From the NCBI RefSeq assembly GCF_006345805.1, contig NW_021823910.1:1-19939 (forward strand): a stretch of 19,939 nucleotides of DNA, given 5' to 3'. How positions within the stretch are numbered: position 1 is the stretch's first letter; the number at the start of each line of letters is the position of its first letter. The notes under the pieces were generated by a model, which was not told where the DNA came from, did no database searches, and worked only from the letters and a program-made list of their open reading frames with translations. The translations under genes were made by a program, and so were the position numbers. Origin of the DNA: Octopus sinensis. Taxonomy: Eukaryota. Shown piece after piece: positions 5,643 through 18,760 of this stretch.

Positions 5643-8305
5643 AATACGATGTCTCGACACATGATGAGGTCCTTAAAACCTTCCCCCCAAAAAAATAAAA
5701 AAAAATTTTCTGCATTTTGGTTAAAATGAACAACTACAATGTCCTCGACTTACATGATGAAGTCCTTAAAACCTTCCCCCCAAAAAAAATTAAAAAAAAT
5801 TTTCTGCATTTGGTTAAAATGAACAACTACAATGTCCTCGACTTACATGATGAAGTCCTTAAAACCTTCCCCCCAAAAAAATTAAAAAAAAATTTTCTGC
5901 ATTTTGGTTAAAATGAACAACTACAATGTCCTCGACTTACATGATGAAGTCCTTATAAAACCTTCCCCCCCAAAAAAAATTAAAAAAAAATTTCTGCATT
6001 TTTTGGTAAATGAACAACTACAATGTCCTCGACTTACATGATGAAGTCCTTAAAACCTTCCCCCCAAAAAAATTAAAAAAAAATTTCTGTGCATTTGGTT
6101 AAAATGAACAACTACAATGTCCTCGACTTACATGATGAAGTCCTTAAAACCTTCCCCCCCAAAAAAAATTAAAAAAAAATTTTCTGCATTTTGGTTAAAA
6201 TGAACAACTACAATGTCCTCGACTTACATGATGAAGTCCTTAAAACCTTCCCCCCAAAAAAAATTAAAAAAAATTTTCTGCATTTTGGTTAAAATGAACA
6301 ACTACAATGTCCTCGACTTACATGATGAAGTCCTTAAAACCTTCCCCCCAAAAAAAATTAAAAAAAATTTTCTGCATTTTGGTTAAAATGAACAACTACA
6401 ATGTCCTCGACTTACATGATGAAGTCCTTAAAACCTTCCCTCCCAAAAAAAATTAAAAAAAATTTTCTGCATTTTGGTTAAAATGAACAACTACAATGTC
6501 CTCGACTTACATGATGAAGTCCTTACCTTAAAACCTCCCCCCCAAAAAAAAAAATTTCTAATTTTTTAAAAAAAAAAATTCGTTCTACATTTGGGTCTTA
6601 AAATTCCCCCCAAAATGAAACAAAAAAAAATAAATTGTCCTCTGACTGCTCGACTACATGATGAAGTCCTTAAAACCTTCCCCCCAAAAAAAATTAAAAA
6701 AAAATTTTCTGCATTTTGGGTTAAATTAAAATGAACCTACAATGTCCTCGACTTACATGATGATGAAGTCCTTAAAACCTTCCCCCCCAAAAAAAATTAA
6801 AAAAAAATTTTCTGCATTTTGGTTAAAATGAACAACTACAATGTCCTCGACTTACATGATGAAGTCCTTAAAACCTTCCCCCCAAAAAAATTAAAAAAAA
6901 ATTTCTGCATTTTGGTTAAAATGAACAACTACAATGTCCTCGACTTACATGATGAAGTCCTTAAAACCTTCCCCCCCAAAAAAATTAAAAAAAAATTTTC
7001 TGCATTTTGGTTAAAATGAACAACTACAATGTCCTCGACTTACATGATGAAGTCCTTAAAACTTCCCCCCCAAAAAAATTAAAAAAAAATTTTCTGATTT
7101 TGGTTAAAATGAACAACTACAATGTCCTCGACTTACATGATGAAGTCCTTAAAACCTTCCCCCCCAAAAAAAATTAAAAAAAAATTTTCTGCATTTTGGT
7201 TAAAATGAACAACTACAATGTCCTCGACTTACATGATGAAGTCCTTAAAACCTTCCCCCCAAAAAAAATTAAAAAAAAATTTTCTGCATTTTGGTTAAAA
7301 TGAACAACTACAATGTCCTCGACTTACATGATGAAGTCCTTAAAACCTTCCCCCCAAAAAAAATTAAAAAAAAATTTCTGCATTTTGGTTAAAATGAACA
7401 ACTACAATGTCCTCGACTTACATGATGAAGTCCTTAAAACCTTCCCTCCCAAAAAAAATTAAAAAAAAATTTTCTGCATTTTGGTTAAAATGAACAACTA
7501 CAATGTCCTCGACTTACATGATGAAGTCCTTAAAACCTTCCCCCCCAAAAAAATTAAAAAAAATTTTCTGCATTTTGGTTAAAATGAACAACTACAATGT
7601 CCTCGACTTACATGATGAAGTCCTTAAAACTTCCCCCCCAAAAAAAATTAAAAAAAAAATTTTCTGCATTTTGGTTAAAATGACAACTACAATGTCCTCG
7701 ACTTACATGATGAAGTCCTTAAAACCTTCCCCCCAAAAAAAATTAAAAAAAAATTTCTGCATTTTGGTTAAAATGAACAACTACAATGTCCTCGACTTAC
7801 ATGATGAAGTCCTTAAAACCTTCCCCCCCAAAAAAATTAAAAAATTAAAAAAAAATTTTCTGCATTTTGGTTAAAATGAACAACTACAATGTCCTCGACT
7901 TACATGATGAAGTCCTTAAAACCTTCCCCCCCAAAAAAAAATTAAAAAAAATTTTCTGCATTTGGTTAAAATGAACAACTACAATGTCCTCGACTTACAT
8001 GATGAAGTCCTTAAAACCTTCCCCCCCAAAAAAAATTAAAAAAAAATTTTCTGCATTTTGGTTAAAATGAACAACTACAATGTCCTCGACTTACATGATG
8101 AAGTCCTTAAAACCTTCCCCCCCAAAAAAATTAAAAAAAATTTTCTGCATTTTGGTTAAAATGAACAACTACAATGTCCTCGACTTACATGATGAAGTCC
8201 TTAAAACCTTCCCCCCCAAAAATCAAAAAATTATTTTCTGCATTTTGATTAAAATGAACAACGCGAATGTCCTCGACCTTCATGATGAGGTCCATTAAAA
8301 CCTTC
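5643..8305 (+). repeat. Tandem array of ~94-bp unit, ~28 copies, inside Helitron
   Basis: Unit ATGAACAACTACAATGTCCTCGACTTACATGATGAAGTCCTTAAAACCTTC(C)n(A)nTT(A)nTTTTCTGCATTTTGGTTAAA. Period is 93-96 bp, with variation mostly in homopolymer runs and one garbled unit at about 6525-6660. Confidence 0.97.
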
Positions 8306-8758: not shown

Positions 8759-10351
8759 TGTCGCGCGCAATGGATGAAACGCGTGCCTAAAGCGAAACGC
8801 TGTGAACCTTGAGAAAACCACAAAAAACTCGAAAATAAAATAACAATCCTTTGATGAAAACAGGAATAAAACCGAGAAATCAATTTTTATTATTATCGTT
8901 TGAAAGATTAACAATTTATTTAAATAATGGTTAGCCATTTTAAAATTACCAAAAAATTAAAAATATTTTAACCTGAAAATTTACCTGTCTAAATTTTTTA
9001 ACTTGTGATTTAAATACTATTTTTTCATTTCCATCTTGATCTTTTATTTTAACTCTATTATTTGAAATTAAATCTTCAACAGTAAGATTTGTTGATGATA
9101 AAAAGATTCTAATTTTCGCTTCTTCGTCCTTTGATTTGTATCAAAATCTTTTTTCAGCAAAACATTATTTCCAACTGCAATTTCTTTCAATGTTTTTGAA
9201 AAATTTCGTTCCATTCTTTCAAGATATTTGTCATTTATGATAGTTTGATTTTCATGTTCTTCAATTAATTCATCATCATTATAATAAGAAATGTTATATC
9301 CTCTTGTTCGGAAAAAAGCCATAAATGGTGACATATTTATAGAAGAATGAATTGAAATATTGTACTGATATACAATTTTTTCTAACACATCCACCCATTT
9401 TTTCTGTTTGTCTGTGAGTTCTTTTTGAATCCATCTGCAAATGGTTTGATTGCAACGCTCCACTTGTCCCTGTGATTCTGGATGTCTTGGACGTCCCCTT
9501 TTATGAATTATTTTAAATTCTTCACATAATGACGTTATTTCTGAATTAACAAATTCTGTTCCGTTGTCAGACTGCAGAATTTTTGGTGGACCATAGGAAA
9601 GAAATATAGTTTTCAATGATTCCGAAACTGTAACTGCTTCTTTATTTTCTATTTTTTTAGCAAAGCAAAATTTTGAATAAATATCTATGACATTCATAAG
9701 ATATTTATAGGAATCATTTATATCTGCATAAAACGAAAGATCGACTAAATCAACTTGATAGCTAAAAATAAGCTATTGAATGAACCGTTCTCGAGGTTCT
9801 TTGGCTACTATGTTGACTAGTGGATATTTTGTCTTTAAGGGCTGACTTCGCTGACATTTGTGGCATAATGATATTACATCCCTAATTATGTTTCGATTGA
9901 TTATGTAAAAATTATTTTTGCAATACTCTTCCATTTTATTAAATCCATAGTGATAAATTGAATGAATCCTTTCACAATGCAGTTTCATGGATTCGAAATC
10001 ATTTGAGGCAATTACCAATATTTTGTTTCCATCAGATTGTTTATAATATAGCACACCTATCATTAGATTTAATAGTACCTCCAGAATTTACGAAATTTCT
10101 ACATTTTTTGAGAAAAACGAAATCTTTTTAGTCTTGAAAAATCTTCTGGTATTGTATTATTTATTAAAAAATCAAGAATATTCTTATACTCCTGATCATC
10201 CTTTACAATGTTGGCAAATCTCATTTCGATAATATTATCTCAAAGTGCGCAATCATCTTTATATTGACTTGATAATTGTCAAGAGCTTAATGAAGGTTAA
10301 ATTCAAGGTCACGGCGTCACTTTAGGCACGCGTTTATTTTGCGCGTGAAAA
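8759..10351 (-). mobile_element. Ginger-like DNA transposon (Gypsy-type integrase with terminal inverted repeats)
   Basis: A perfect 16-bp inverted core AAACGCGTGCCTAAAG (8777-8792) / CTTTAGGCACGCGTTT (10320-10335) sits within ~50-bp imperfect IRs. The left end begins TGT at 8759. The IRs enclose an H2C2 plus rve integrase gene, with no gag, RT or LTRs. Exact termini and TSD are uncertain. Confidence 0.7.
8960..10224 (-). pseudogene. Integrase/transposase (H2C2 zinc finger + DDE rve core), intron-containing, frameshifted
   Basis: ATG at 10224 (MRFANIVKDDQEYKNILDFL...). Zinc finger HSIYHYG...CHKC; catalytic motifs YQVDLVD, ILQSDNGTEF and HPESQGQVER. Predicted GT-AG introns at 10057-10078 and 9762-9785. 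A 1-nt shift in a T-run near 10115 and further shifts after about 9100. Confidence 0.88.
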
Positions 10352-10443
10352 CTGTCGCGCTGTCGCATAATAATTTTATAACTATTACTTGAGTTTTTCG
10401 TAAAGATAGAATTGATTTCGGTATGCCTCTTTTCTAAACTTTT

Positions 10444-10463
<20 letters not shown>

Positions 10464-10474
<11 letters not shown>

Positions 10475-13400
10475 CCCCCGGCCCCTTCAATTGAAGGAAG
10501 CCGGTGGCTAACAAGAACGTTAGGGCCAATGTCGGACGCTCCCAAAGATCCCCGATCGTGATCCGGTGTTCCGAGGAAGTAGAAGGCGGGCCTGGACAGG
10601 AGAAAAGGTCGTTGAGGGAATAGGAAGGGGTTATTTCACCAAGACCGATTTTTATGCGATAATCGTGTAGGCCAGTATGGTGGCCACAGCGGAGACGAGC
10701 CAAGTTCACTCGGGCTTCTCTTGAGAGGGAGGATTCGATCTTATTAATTGGCGGCGGAAGGCGTCCCAGAAGCTTGTTTATTCCAAGACATCTGATTGCC
10801 CTCGTAGCCACCAGGTCGTGAATCCCCTTCTGGTTAATGTCCGGAGGGGATCGTATAAGCTTGCGGACTTTGTCCGCGAGGGTCGGAACTATTCTCCTGT
10901 TGTTAGTGGAGTGCCAGAGGAAGTAGCCAGGGTGATTTAGGGTTCGGCATTTGTCAAGAAATTGCAGCCCGAGCATTTCAAAATGGTCACTGATTGGAAG
11001 GATTTTCGATTCCCAATGTAGGTGGTCGGTAGGTGTCGTTTTTAGACAGCCGGTAATAATTCGTAATGCTGAGTTTTGAGTTCTCTGAAGTTTTTCAAGG
11101 TTTGTATTAGATAAGCAGGAACCCCAAGCAGGGATGGCGTAGTTCATAGTTGTTCTAATAAACTGCTTGTATACAGTTGTTAGACTTTCCTTATCCTGCC
11201 CAAATGAAGTCCCCGCAATAGCTCGGAGCACATTGAGTTTTTTCTGGGATTTTCCACAGATATATGAAACATGTTTCGAGAAGGACAAACAGCAATCAAA
11301 TATCAGACCCAAGATTTTGGGGGATTTTTCAACTGGGAGTGGAGTGTTGTCTAGGAATAGTTTAGGCTCTAAGTTGAACTGACGGCGGTCAGTTGTGAAT
11401 AGCGTAACAGATGATTTGGAAGGAGAAGGTTGAAGAAGATTGCATTTCAGCCAGGACGAAAGAGTGTTCATGTGTTCCTGCAGAAATCCAGAAGCGGTGA
11501 TTATGTTTTGGTGGCGGGAGGCAAAAATTAAGTCATCAGCGTAGGAGAGAAGTAGAGTATTATTGTTCGTCGGGATATTTGACAGATGTAAGTTAAATAA
11601 GGCAGGTGAAAGGACCGAGCCTTGGGGAACTCCGTTAGGCAAGTATTTGTAGCGTGAGTAAGAAGACATGATTGTGGTGCGACCAAGACGCCCAGAGAGA
11701 AAAGAGAGTAGCCATGACTTTATTTGGTGGGGGAATTCCGTATCGGTTATTTTCCTACACAGAACGTGTCTTGACGTTCTGTCAAATGCCTTTTCAATGT
11801 CGATGGATGCAATAATTGTTCTTTGAGGTGGCTTATGATTGTTAAACCCATCCGCAATGAATTGTGTCAGTTTGAAAGATGGGTGGAAGTGGAATGCAAA
11901 GAACGAAAGCCATGTTGAGATTCAGCAAATGGGAGGAAAGGTTTTATGATGCTCAATACAACTCGCTCTGTTATTTTTGAAACCACTGAGATCAAAGAGA
12001 TAGGTCGAAAAGAGGAGGGGTCAGAGGTATCACGATTTGGCTTTGGGATAGGGATGATGGTAGATTTCTTCCAAAGCATAGGAACCAGACCATGGTTGAT
12101 CGAGTATTCGATTAAATTGGTCAGAGCCAGAAAGCCATTAGGACCCAGATTTTTTAGGTGGTGGATGGCAAGGCCATCAGGACCTCTGGCGTTAGAATTC
12201 CGCGAGTTAACAACAAGTTGCCTGGTAAATGATTCTGGGATGTTAATATAGTCAGTAGAATTGTCATTTGACTTATAATGTGATTTTCTTACGAAACGGA
12301 GATCCTTTGGGGTAGGAAGGTGACTGATTTTTGCATAATGGCGAATTAAGATGTTGGCTTGATCCTGGAAGATAGGACAGATTTTTTGGTCGAGATACCG
12401 GTGGCATGTGAGAGGGGACATGTTTGCCTCGTGTGAATTTTCTTGAGGGTTCTCCAGAAAGCACGGGATCCAGTATTTGGGGTTATTGAAGTGATAAAAT
12501 CATTCCATTCGTCAGTTTTATGTTTCTTGATTAATTCGTCAATTTGTTTGTTGATTTCTGCTAGAGATTCTCCATTTCCATTGATAGAAGTCGTCGATTT
12601 GATCCTCCTTCGTTTTTTGAATAGTTCAATGATAGGTGGGGGGAAATGGAGGCCGTGATTTCGGATGAAGCCGCGGGGAATAAATTTTTTGTCCGCAGAA
12701 AGAAGTGTACTAGTAAAGAAAGCAACGGCAGCGTCAAATGATTGAATGGAGGAGCAAGAAAAATTACTGAATATACGTTCAGTTTCACTCCTGAACGAGT
12801 CCCATTTCCCACGTTTGTAGTTAATGTAGGTCTTCGTAATTCTCTTCTTTACAGGGTGATGGTTTATTTTGATTAGAATAGGATTGTGGTCCGTTGGTAG
12901 GTCGTACAGAACTGTCCATTTGGCGTCGAGGGCGATGTTTGGGGAACATAAGGTAATGTCAGGAGAAGTGTTTGAATCTCCAGGTCGCATTGCACAGCGG
13001 GTGTGTAGAAGAGGGTTGTTTAGAGTGATCAATTCTTCCGCATCCGTTGTGATTTGCTGGCCACGTTTGTCAGTTTTGTTTGTGGATAACCAGAGAGGAT
13101 GGTGGGCGTTGAAGTCGCCACATAGAATACAGTTTTCAATTGAAAAAAGAGGCAGTAAGTTCGGTGTATAATTGGGAGCACATGACGAAATCGGGGGGAT
13201 ATATGTGTTAACAACAGAGTAACATATCTTGTTAATGTTAATTTGAATAGATGAAATTTCGGTAAATCGATCATTAGTTAAGAGAGATTCAATGTTGGCA
13301 GTTGAGTCTGCAAAGGGAATGGCCTCGTGAATGATGAGTAATGAGACCACCGCCAGGCTTTCCAGACTGGCGGTCACGACGAATGGTGGAATATCCCTTA

Positions 13401-13669
13401 AAACGGGGGGTTTGGGATTTTGGAGTAAGTTTGGTCTCTTGAATAAGAGCTATATCAATAGAGTTCGTGTGTAGAAAGTAGCGTAGGTCATTGCATTTCT
13501 TGGAAATCCCGTTGATGTTCAATTGAAGGATGGTTAGTGTTCTAATAGGCTCAGGTCCAGGGTTTTGTTCCACATCTCCACACCGAATCAACAATAGAGT
13601 CAGGGAACGTAAGCTTGGCGCTCGTCCCGTAGCCACTACCAACCAAACCGTTGACAGGTTGGTTGGCAA
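10464..13669 (-). pseudogene. APE-RT polyprotein of the LINE, split by ~3 frameshifts
   Basis: ORF-track pieces 13289-13669, 12346-13377, 11867-12421 and 10464-11669 are consecutive domains of one protein. 11670-11866 reads TIIASIDIEKAFDRTSRHVLCRKI... by hand. Confidence 0.92.
13553..13597 (-). other. 2A-like (StopGo) peptide LLLIRCGDVEQNPG|P
   Basis: Exact D(V/I)ExNPGP consensus, preceded by a leucine-rich helix and placed just before the APE domain. Confidence 0.9.
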
Positions 13670-13679
13670 GGGGAAAAAT

Positions 13680-13740
13680 TGGTTCTGTTTGTTGCTGATG
13701 TGAAATCAGCATCCAATCGTCTCCACGAGAAGGTGAACCA
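13680..13740 (-). ncRNA. Candidate HDV-like self-cleaving ribozyme at LINE 5' end (P1 5' strand missing)
   Basis: Minus strand: TGGTTC(P2) ACC(P3) TTCTCGT(L3) GGA(P3') GACGATT(P1') GG(P1.1) A TGCTGAT-TTCAC-ATCAGCA(P4) A C AAACA(J4/2) GAACCA(P2'). Module order and the L3 UUCnCGU loop fit the HDV fold. One P3 mismatch and a long J4/2. Confidence 0.6.
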
Positions 13741-13999
13741 CTAAACTTTTTTATTATTCAAAAAAATTTTTTAAATAGATAACCGAAGGAGGAAAAACGA
13801 AGCTGAAGAAAAAACGGTCAGCTTAATAAGGTAATAATTAAATCTTTTTTGTGTGTCGCTTTCTTGCCTGCCGTATCTCCCCCTGCCCCATTTCCGCCAG
13901 TAAAAAACAAAAAAATAAAAAAAGAAAAAAAAGGAAATTACAAAGGAAAAATGAAAAAATTAAATATAAAAAAAATAGACCACAAAAATGAAAAAAAAA

Positions 14000-14198
14000 G
14001 TTTGCAATGACAATAAACAAGGCCCAGGGACAGTCATTAAAGGTAGTTGGGTTATTTTTAGAGAGTGAGTGCTTTTCACATGGAGCTGTATGTGGGATGC
14101 TCGAGGGTAGGCAGAAGAGAAAATTTATTCATATATGCCAAGGAAGGACGGACGACAAACATCGTTTATCAACAGGCGATAGAATAGGGTTACATTAA
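14000..14198 (+). pseudogene. Helitron PIF1 helicase C-terminal remnant
   Basis: FAMTINKAQGQSLKVVG...FSHG, then a 2-nt deletion relative to the 18560-18760 copy. Confidence 0.9.
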
Positions 14199-17440: not shown

Positions 17441-18045
17441 AATACGATGTCCTCGACTTACATGATGAGGTCCTTAAAACCTTCCCCCCAAAAAAATTAA
17501 AAAAAAAAATTTTCTGCATTTTGGTTAAAATGAACAACTACGATGTCCTCGACTTACATGATGAGGTCCTTAAAACCTTCCCCCCAAAAAAAATTAAAAA
17601 AAAATTTTCTGCATTTTGGTTAAAATGAACAACTACGATGTCCTCGACTTACATGATGAGGTCCTTAAAAACTTCCCCCCCAAAAAAATTAAAAAAAAAT
17701 TTTCTGCATTTTGGTTAAAATGAACAACTACGATGTCCTCGACTTACATGATGAGGTCCTTAAAAACTTCCCCCCCAAAAAAATTAAAAAAAAATTTTCT
17801 GCATTTTGGTTAAAATGAACAACTACGATGTCCTCGACTTACATGATGAGGTCCTTAAAACCTTCCCCCCAAAAAAAATTGAAAATTTTTTTTGCATTTT
17901 GGTTAAAATGAACAACTACGATGTCCTCGACTTACATGATGAGGTCCTTAAAACCTTTCCGCCAAAAAATCAAAAATTATTTTCTGCATTTGATTAAAAT
18001 GAACAACGTTAATGTCCTCGACATTCATGATGAGGTTCATTAAAA
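17441..18045 (+). repeat. Tandem array of the same ~95-bp unit, ~7 copies
   Basis: Same unit as 5643-8305 but carrying the TACGATGTC / GATGAGGTC variants. Confidence 0.97.
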
Positions 18046-18284
18046 ATCTCACGTATTAAGAATATCCTTGATGAAAACGACAGCGAGAATATTAACAATG
18101 ATGAACTCCCAATTATTCGCGACTGGCTGTTAAAAAAATTAGACAGGTTGTTGCCGTGGCGGCAGAGATTTTTTTTGTTTATACTTTTTTACAAATTTTT
18201 AAAGTTTTTTTTGTTTTTTCATTTCTTTTGTTTTTAAATTATTTATTTTTATTTGTTTTTTTTATTTTTTTTGTTATTTTCTAC

Positions 18285-18760
18285 AAATTCAACCGGATTG
18301 AATTTTTAAACTCCTTAGATCCCTCTGGAATGCCGAATCATCTTTTAAAGTTAAAGATAGGCGTTCCAGTGGTTTTATTACGAAATCTTGCGCCACCTAA
18401 ATTATGCAACGGAACGAGGTTAGTTATCAAAAATTTGATGGCTAACGTAATAGAGGCGACGATATTAACAGGTAAGTATAGAGGTGAGGATGTTTATATT
18501 CCACGAATTCCGATAATTTCTGATGAATTACCATTTAGATTTAAAAGGCTGCAATTCCTTTGAGGATGAGTTTTGCAATGACAATAAACAAGGCCCAGGG
18601 ACAGTCATTAAAGGTAGTTGGGTTATTTTTAGAGAGTGAGTGCTTTTCACATGGACAGCTGTATGTGGGATGCTCGAGGGTAGGCAGAAGAGAAAATTTA
18701 TTCATATATGCCAAGGAAGGACGGACGACAAACATCGTTTATCAACAGGCGATAGAATAG
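18285..18760 (+). pseudogene. Helitron PIF1 helicase C-terminal fragment
   Basis: [41 protein letters not shown]...IPRIP...FKRLQF, a 1-nt shift near 18556, then RMSFAMTINKAQGQSL...FSHGQLYVGCSRV...NIVY. Confidence 0.95.

Follow-up and report, generated by a model that had tools for sequence, protein, structure and literature searches.

A probable 5'-truncated remnant of an HDV-like ribozyme at the start of a 2A-encoding LINE from Octopus sinensis, with predicted intact counterparts in distant relatives

The L1Tc retrotransposon of Trypanosoma cruzi, together with its ingi relatives, is the closest described system to the elements considered here. The first nucleotides of this LINE form an HDV-like ribozyme, L1TcRz or Pr77, which cleaves 5' of position +1 and so is carried along with the element (PMC3185411, PMC5814959), and an in-frame N-terminal 2A lies ahead of the endonuclease and reverse transcriptase (PMC5814959). 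A 5' ribozyme on an AP-endonuclease LINE, followed by an in-frame 2A, is also the arrangement that we describe below, and because L1Tc combines the two, this layout has a published precedent. We saw no sequence similarity between L1Tc and our 2A-encoding LINEs (2A-LINEs), and P1.1 of L1Tc has 1 to 2 bp. L1Tc also has an RNase H, a poly(A) tail, and proven promoter and cleavage activities, whereas our elements end in (TAAA)n and their ribozymes are predicted from sequence. Their hosts are apparently invertebrates or other non-trypanosomatids rather than trypanosomes.

The 5' HDV-like double pseudoknot of R2 frees the element RNA from its co-transcript and has been proposed to function in cap-independent translation (PMC6765202, PMC3774820). 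The 2A-LINEs resemble R2 in having such a double pseudoknot, but R2 inserts site specifically into 28S rDNA, encodes a restriction-like endonuclease, lacks a 2A, carries larger peripheral domains, and in some species takes P1 from the 28S sequence. HDV-like ribozymes are an established 5'-end feature of R2, L1Tc/ingi, baggins, RTE, and further LINEs and SINEs (PMC6765202). Those of baggins, RTE, and other metazoan LINEs or SINEs, from Ruminski et al. 2011 as that paper summarizes it, agree with ours in fold, in sitting at the 5' terminus of LINEs that lack a promoter, and in the processing role presumed for them. Our full-text literature search, whose coverage did not extend to the primary Ruminski et al. 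2011 survey, returned no paper tying 2A-encoding LINEs outside trypanosomes to ribozymes.

The window, by which we mean the whole 19,939-nt stretch of DNA analyzed, is a eukaryotic region rich in transposons. Integrase zinc-finger and core-domain open reading frames (ORFs) lie at 9068-10063 on the minus strand, directly 3' of the LINE, and an ORF with a Pif1 helicase 2B domain, possibly a Helitron fragment, lies at 18156-18563 on the plus strand. Two satellite arrays (5645-8305 and 17443-18045) have a 94- to 95-bp unit, 93 to 94% matches between copies, and a strong excess of C over G. The LINE body occupies 10448-13740 on the minus strand (about 3.3 kb) and is enclosed by an exact 14-nt target-site duplication, ATAAAAAAGTTTAG, which reads from 13754 to 13741 at one end and from 10447 to 10434 at the other; no exact 14-mer would be expected twice by chance. 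Since the duplication ends there, position 13740 is the 5' end of the LINE. The coding features run from the N-terminal 2A through the AP endonuclease to the reverse transcriptase, as follows.

13741-13754, minus strand: 5' copy of the target-site duplication, ATAAAAAAGTTTAG, an exact 14-mer present twice.
13710-13712, minus strand: the element's first AUG, located where the P4 hairpin begins its stem base; its frame in this copy differs from that of the 2A.
13636-13678, minus strand: a U-run, 13674-13678, and after it a conserved hairpin, 13636-13669, both within the leader-coding region.
13553-13579, minus strand: 2A ribosome-skipping motif GDVEQNPGP (LLLIRCGDVEQNPGP), with its Asp codon at 13576.
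12346-13377, minus strand: ORF with the AP endonuclease domain, in the LINE body.
11867-12421 and 10464-11669, minus strand: ORFs with the reverse transcriptase domain, in the LINE body.
10434-10474, minus strand: 3' copy of the target-site duplication (10434-10447) and the (TAAA)8 tail (10443-10474).

Frameshifts divide the coding region into ORFs of 126, 343, 184, and 401 amino acids and thus mark an old, dead copy. The AUG at 13710-13712 is the only one in any frame of the window leader (13577-13740, minus strand), and the residues homologous to the relatives' "FS.CQP" sit in the third frame. The AUG, these residues, and the 2A are therefore in different frames, which requires at least two frameshifts between start and 2A.

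The genomic and antigenomic HDV ribozymes and the CPEB3 ribozyme share the order P1-P2-P3-L3-P3'-P1'-P1.1-P4-J4/2(C)-P2', a 7-nt L3, a G at position 1 (G1), and purines after the catalytic C. In HDV-like ribozymes P1 has 6 to 7 bp and starts with the nucleotide at the cleavage site, usually G1, and a 3-bp P3 carries an L3 of about 7 nt. The HDV and CPEB3 ribozymes reside in viral RNA or in a mammalian intron, not in a retrotransposon, and J4/2 in our elements reads C-A-A-A/G. The sequence-only reading had placed HDV-like modules at the very 5' end of the octopus LINE. Read as minus-strand RNA from 13740 to 13680, the 61 bases are U GGUUC, A CC, UUCUCGU, GG A, GACGAUU, GG, A UGCUGAU UUCAC AUCAGCA A, C AAA CA, GAACC A, and their order is P2, P3, L3, P3', the P1 3' strand, GG, P4, C13691-AAA, and P2'.

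13735-13740, minus strand: P2 5' strand, UGGUUC, forming 6 perfect base pairs with 13680-13685.
13722-13734, minus strand: P3 and L3 (A-CC, UUCUCGU, GG-A), with pairs C13733-G13723 and C13732-G13724 and an A13734·A13722 mismatch; the 7-nt L3 is UUCUCGU, 13731-13725.
13715-13721, minus strand: orphan P1 3' strand, GACGAUU; its partner is absent and is predicted to be GAUCGUC.
13713-13714, minus strand: P1.1 strand, GG, which can pair with U13730 and C13729 in L3 (C-G and U·G).
13693-13711, minus strand: P4 hairpin, UGCUGAU / UUCAC / AUCAGCA, with 13711-13705 pairing with 13699-13693 in 7 perfect base pairs around the loop 13704-13700.
13686-13692, minus strand: J4/2, A-C-AAA-CA, with C13691 as candidate catalytic C, followed by AAA.
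13680-13685, minus strand: P2 3' strand, GAACCA, pairing with 13735-13740.

Each element of the earlier description thus held base by base: the HDV module order, the perfect 7-bp P4 and 6-bp P2, the placement directly inside ATAAAAAAGTTTAG (13740 is the first base inside it), and the C at 13691. P2, P1.1, P4, and a J4/2 C followed by purines are all present in this copy, and the P1 helix is represented by its 3' strand only. As had been claimed, its 5' strand is missing: the target-site duplication abuts P2, with no complement of GACGAUU between them. The best upstream candidate partner, UCGUU, would form 5 bp from about 60 nt upstream and was rejected, being outside the duplication. At a similar distance of about 60 nt from the LINE, likewise upstream and outside the duplication, GACCGUUUUUUC at 13800-13815 (minus strand) resembles a leader motif of the relatives, ACCGUUUUUUCGG; either chance in AT-rich sequence or a leftover from another copy may account for it.

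We then looked for the fold in related elements. A protein search with the N-terminal ORF of the window LINE returned only a LINE family without a 2A. The nearest reverse transcriptase proteins are about 40% identical to that of the window LINE, and the contigs that encode them, L001 and L002, likewise open with a 2A. We collected loci with an N-terminal 2A on an endonuclease-reverse transcriptase ORF from JGI metagenome contigs (queried with a 2A-plus-endonuclease alignment), from a profile search with contig look-up, and from GTDB genome contigs. The GTDB loci (L044 to L059) are 2A-LINE fragments in contigs binned as bacterial or archaeal metagenome-assembled genomes (MAGs), for example of Thiotrichales, Thiodiazotropha, Sedimenticola, and Nitrosopumilus, and presumably represent eukaryotic host DNA contaminating symbiont or environmental bins.

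Nine of these relatives have the full HDV order, including a 6-bp P1 5' strand and a 2- to 4-nt J1/2 directly upstream of P2. Three of the folds read as follows, 5' to 3'.

L011, 156-226: GUCUCC CAA AGUCGAC GCC UACGUGC GGU GGAGAU GU P4 CAAAG GUCGACU.
L013, 3-100: GAUUGC AAA AACACG GCC UACUCGA GGU GCAAUU GU P4 CAAAU CGUGUU.
L044, 88-154: GGUCCA AAA GAGUACA GCC UACACGU GGU UGGACU GU UGCUGC-UUCAAC-GCAGCA CAAAU UGUACUC.

The others lie at L005 4-112, L042 1900-1975, L043 ~2030-2103, L047 ~974-1040, L007 637-748, and L021 29-124. The intact folds stand 113 to 192 nt upstream of the 2A (L005, L007, L011, L013, L021, L042, L043, and L044), and the corresponding distance in the window is 104 nt. The window site therefore matches the relatives in location, which is the first bases of the element, some 100 to 190 nt upstream of an N-terminal 2A that is followed by AP endonuclease and reverse transcriptase. 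In the relatives, the ORF begins inside or just after the ribozyme.

The P1 strand GGUUCC is common to L005, L007, L021, and L043, and the sequence directly upstream of G1 is unrelated among them. Because the flanks diverge exactly at G1, this base looks like the first of the element. Microsatellites precede the L044 and L047 ribozymes. Some members showed local peculiarities. In L007 (655-684) and L021 (47-76), an L3 of about 30 nt with an internal hairpin replaces the usual 7 nt, an unusual elaboration for an HDV-like core, with P1, P1.1, P2, P3, and P4 intact. At the 5' end of L011 (139-172), a 17-nt tandem duplication (GTCTCCCAAAGTCGACG twice) encompasses P1, J1/2, and the P2 5' strand.

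The nine folds vary in sequence and keep their pairing. MAFFT misaligned the helices when given the natural sequences (alignments A3, A4, A6, and A9). The core alignment, A11, was built by hand, with P4 and long L3 loops trimmed; in the seed alignments single linker bases were dropped as well. In A11, 98.5% of cells are paired and 19 of the 22 pairs, distributed over all five helices, show compensatory change; covariation scored 1.035, compared with 0.25 in shuffled and 0.08 to 0.21 in slid controls. These statistics are inflated, because the members were picked for fitting the fold. All six P2 positions covary, and P1.1 appears as AC/GU, UC/GA, and GC/GC. G1, a C-G pair in P3, the GU of P3', and the C-A-A of J4/2 are invariant.

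A more independent view came from covariance model R2, which was built from P2 to P2' of L044, L011, L013, and L005 as a gapless MAFFT alignment with P4 trimmed, and from which both P1 and the window were left out. Outside its seeds it matched L047 (42 bits, E = 2e-10), L043 (29.9 bits, E = 1.4e-6), and L002 (17.8 bits, E = 0.01); the minus strand of L049 (15.7 bits, E = 0.049) was the sole apparently spurious match with E below 0.05. The model knows neither P1 nor P1.1, yet P1 pairs at 5 of 6 positions in L047 and at all 6 in L043, and P1.1 pairs at 2 of 2 in both. Of the evidence for the double pseudoknot, these two helices are the least circular part. The sequence-only reading had asked for longer copies with the P1 5' strand and covariation. 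Both were found, in nine distant relatives that share the 2A-endonuclease-reverse transcriptase layout at about 40% protein identity rather than in copies of the same family.

Against this background the octopus copy departs from its relatives in four ways. It shares with them the order and spacing of the modules, U1, C3, C5, and G6 of L3, the P1.1 complementarity, and C-AAA, and the base (UGCUG/CAGCA) and UUCAC loop of its P4 resemble those of L044, L007, and L047. It differs in lacking the P1 5' strand and J1/2, in having one extra base in P1' and one in J4/2, and in P3, where two C-G pairs and the A13734·A13722 mismatch stand against 3 bp in the relatives, 8 of 9 of which have G·U at the mismatched position. 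Because all nine relatives carry P1 and J1/2 before P2, a 5' truncation of about 8 to 10 nt with loss of activity is the simplest reading, in agreement with the slight truncation and probable inactivity that had been suggested. With P1 and J1/2 missing, A·A in P3, and the ORF frameshifted, this copy is an inactive relic.

One could instead take the copy to be complete, its family having given up P1 and cleavage and kept P2, P3, and P4 as an internal promoter, an IRES-like start, or a site to which the protein of the LINE binds. Several points favor this: the first 77 nt of L1Tc are promoter and ribozyme at once (PMC5814959), the 5' pseudoknot of R2 binds the R2 protein, and HDV-like folds have been proposed as IRESs (PMC6765202). 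That the first AUG of the window element lies within P4 also fits such a role. However, the P1 3' strand is still there, correctly placed, of suitable length, and with a terminal U, although it has no partner, and P1 is present in 9 of 9 relatives. Small 5' truncations are routine in LINE insertion, and this copy is decayed in other respects. We consider the loss of P1 by the family improbable, and truncation of this copy remains the preferred reading.

The other question was whether two hairpins and a closing helix might have fallen into HDV order by chance, with no ribozyme ancestry. For the bare structure the numbers are unremarkable. The minimum-free-energy z-score of the motif is -1.3. 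A scripted descriptor without P1 found the 13680-13740 site as its single match in the window, but it also finds 0.63 sites per dinucleotide-shuffled window and at least one in 48% of shuffles. Lenient descriptors (L3 up to 45 nt, free G·U) matched every locus dozens of times, in both orientations, and were dropped as nondiscriminating. No HDV-type match came from an Rfam cmscan, either at the gathering score or, for 13300-14000, at E ≤ 10. The Rfam result for the window is uninformative, because the intact relatives are missed too: no Rfam model detects the 2A-LINE ribozymes, and nothing was found at E ≤ 1 in the nine loci with intact ribozymes.

Our own models ranked the site first but scored it low. 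The best match in the whole window, on both strands, of covariance model R2 and of model R3 (nine seeds, built without the window) was 13739-13681, at 9.4 and 9.2 bits, respectively, with E = 1.1 and 0.87 under a rough calibration; these scores fall below the 15.7 bits of the apparently spurious match among the loci, and nonseed relatives score 18 to 42 bits. A two-seed model, R1, was too specific, recovering only its seeds with default filters; once the filters were disabled, it placed the window site fourth, with 8.4 bits.

Position changes the picture. The site lies where the relatives have their ribozyme, on the sense strand, at the first bases of the element and ahead of the 2A by about 100 nt. 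In a sense-strand leader of about 130 nt, the chance expectation derived from the shuffled-window descriptor rate is about 0.002, and R3 applied to the stretch from the target-site duplication to the 2A alone gives E = 0.008. The site is moreover the top window match of two models built without it, and it shares with the relatives features that are outside the descriptor, namely the four L3 bases, C-AAA, and the P4 base and UUCA(A)C loop seen in L044 and L047. The bare structure is not beyond chance; given its position, it is. We accordingly give a chance resemblance a small probability. A different topology, in which GGUUC (13739-13735) would be P1 of a full-length copy because the opening (U)GGUUCA resembles the GGUUCCA that opens four relatives, is hardly credible: no P2 or P3 arrangement fits, R2 and R3 align GGUUC to P2, and its partner GAACC lies after P4 and C-AAA, the P2' position, and not between P3' and P4.

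Taking these points together, we estimate a probability of roughly 80%, judged from sequence comparison, that 13680-13740 (minus strand) is the 5'-truncated and diverged remnant of an HDV-like ribozyme belonging to a clade of 2A-encoding AP-endonuclease LINEs.

In the intact elements, the ribozyme would make up the first ~70 to 110 nt of LINEs that have one ORF, with a 2A at its start, and the RNA would fold into a nested double pseudoknot of P1/P1.1/P4 and P2/P3. The J4/2 C of the invariant C-A-A would then catalyze cleavage immediately 5' of the invariant G1, in the manner of HDV-like self-scission, which yields 5'-OH and 2',3'-cyclic phosphate ends. By analogy with R2 and L1Tc, co-transcriptional cleavage would free the LINE RNA from a read-through or host co-transcript and set its exact 5' end, and the ribozyme, retained on the RNA, would thereby be passed on to every new insertion. 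Translation of this uncapped RNA may start inside or just after the ribozyme, the 2A removing a short leader peptide. We infer from these parallels that family members self-cleave; GAUCGUC is the P1 strand predicted for the family of the window element. The window copy itself would have lost P1 and J1/2 (about 8 to 10 nt) at insertion; with the substrate strand gone, it would be a fossil incapable of cleavage.

Downstream of the ribozyme, inside the leader-coding region, we observed a second arrangement. A run of 5 to 6 U residues, a 3- to 6-nt spacer, and a 9- to 12-bp hairpin occur in the window and in L007 (839-), L013 (172-), L022 (86-), L044 (194-), L047 (1082-), L002 (272-), L040 (420-), and L001 (246-). 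The U-run starts 64 to 76 nt before the Asp codon of the 2A in most relatives and about 100 nt before it in the window. RNAalifold on 11 sequences gave 13 pairs, 5 of them with compensatory change, and in L002, L040, and L001 a hairpin of unrelated sequence occupies the equivalent place. The layout resembles a slippery site with its stimulator. A -1 frameshift here is not required, L007 and L022 being in frame from the AUG through the 2A; L013 has GUG at the position of the L022 AUG. It is conceivable, if unlikely, that the ribozyme, a start codon in or next to it, the U5-6 run, the 9- to 12-bp hairpin at a fixed 64 to 76 nt before the 2A, and the 2A form an old conserved cassette common to a wide 2A-LINE clade and mirrored in L1Tc, in which the U-run and hairpin would be an undescribed cis-acting RNA signal. 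Such a signal could serve in ribosome pausing, in control of frameshifting, or as a site of cis-binding by the LINE protein, and it would act in concert with translation of the 5'-OH RNA without a cap.

The octopus copy is a fossil, and the family-level pattern is a modest extension of known systems. The relatives provide compact candidates of 67 to 71 nt for biochemistry and a seed for a model missing from Rfam. When a LINE begins with an HDV-like ribozyme, this explains how an element that lacks a promoter obtains a precise 5' end and an RNA that is uncapped yet translatable. Our analysis indicates that a broad, mostly unannotated clade of 2A-LINEs, with members in contigs from soil metagenomes and in contaminant contigs of marine-symbiont MAGs, carries such ribozymes with clear covariation, and that the pairing of ribozyme and 2A, documented so far for trypanosome L1Tc, extends to other hosts.
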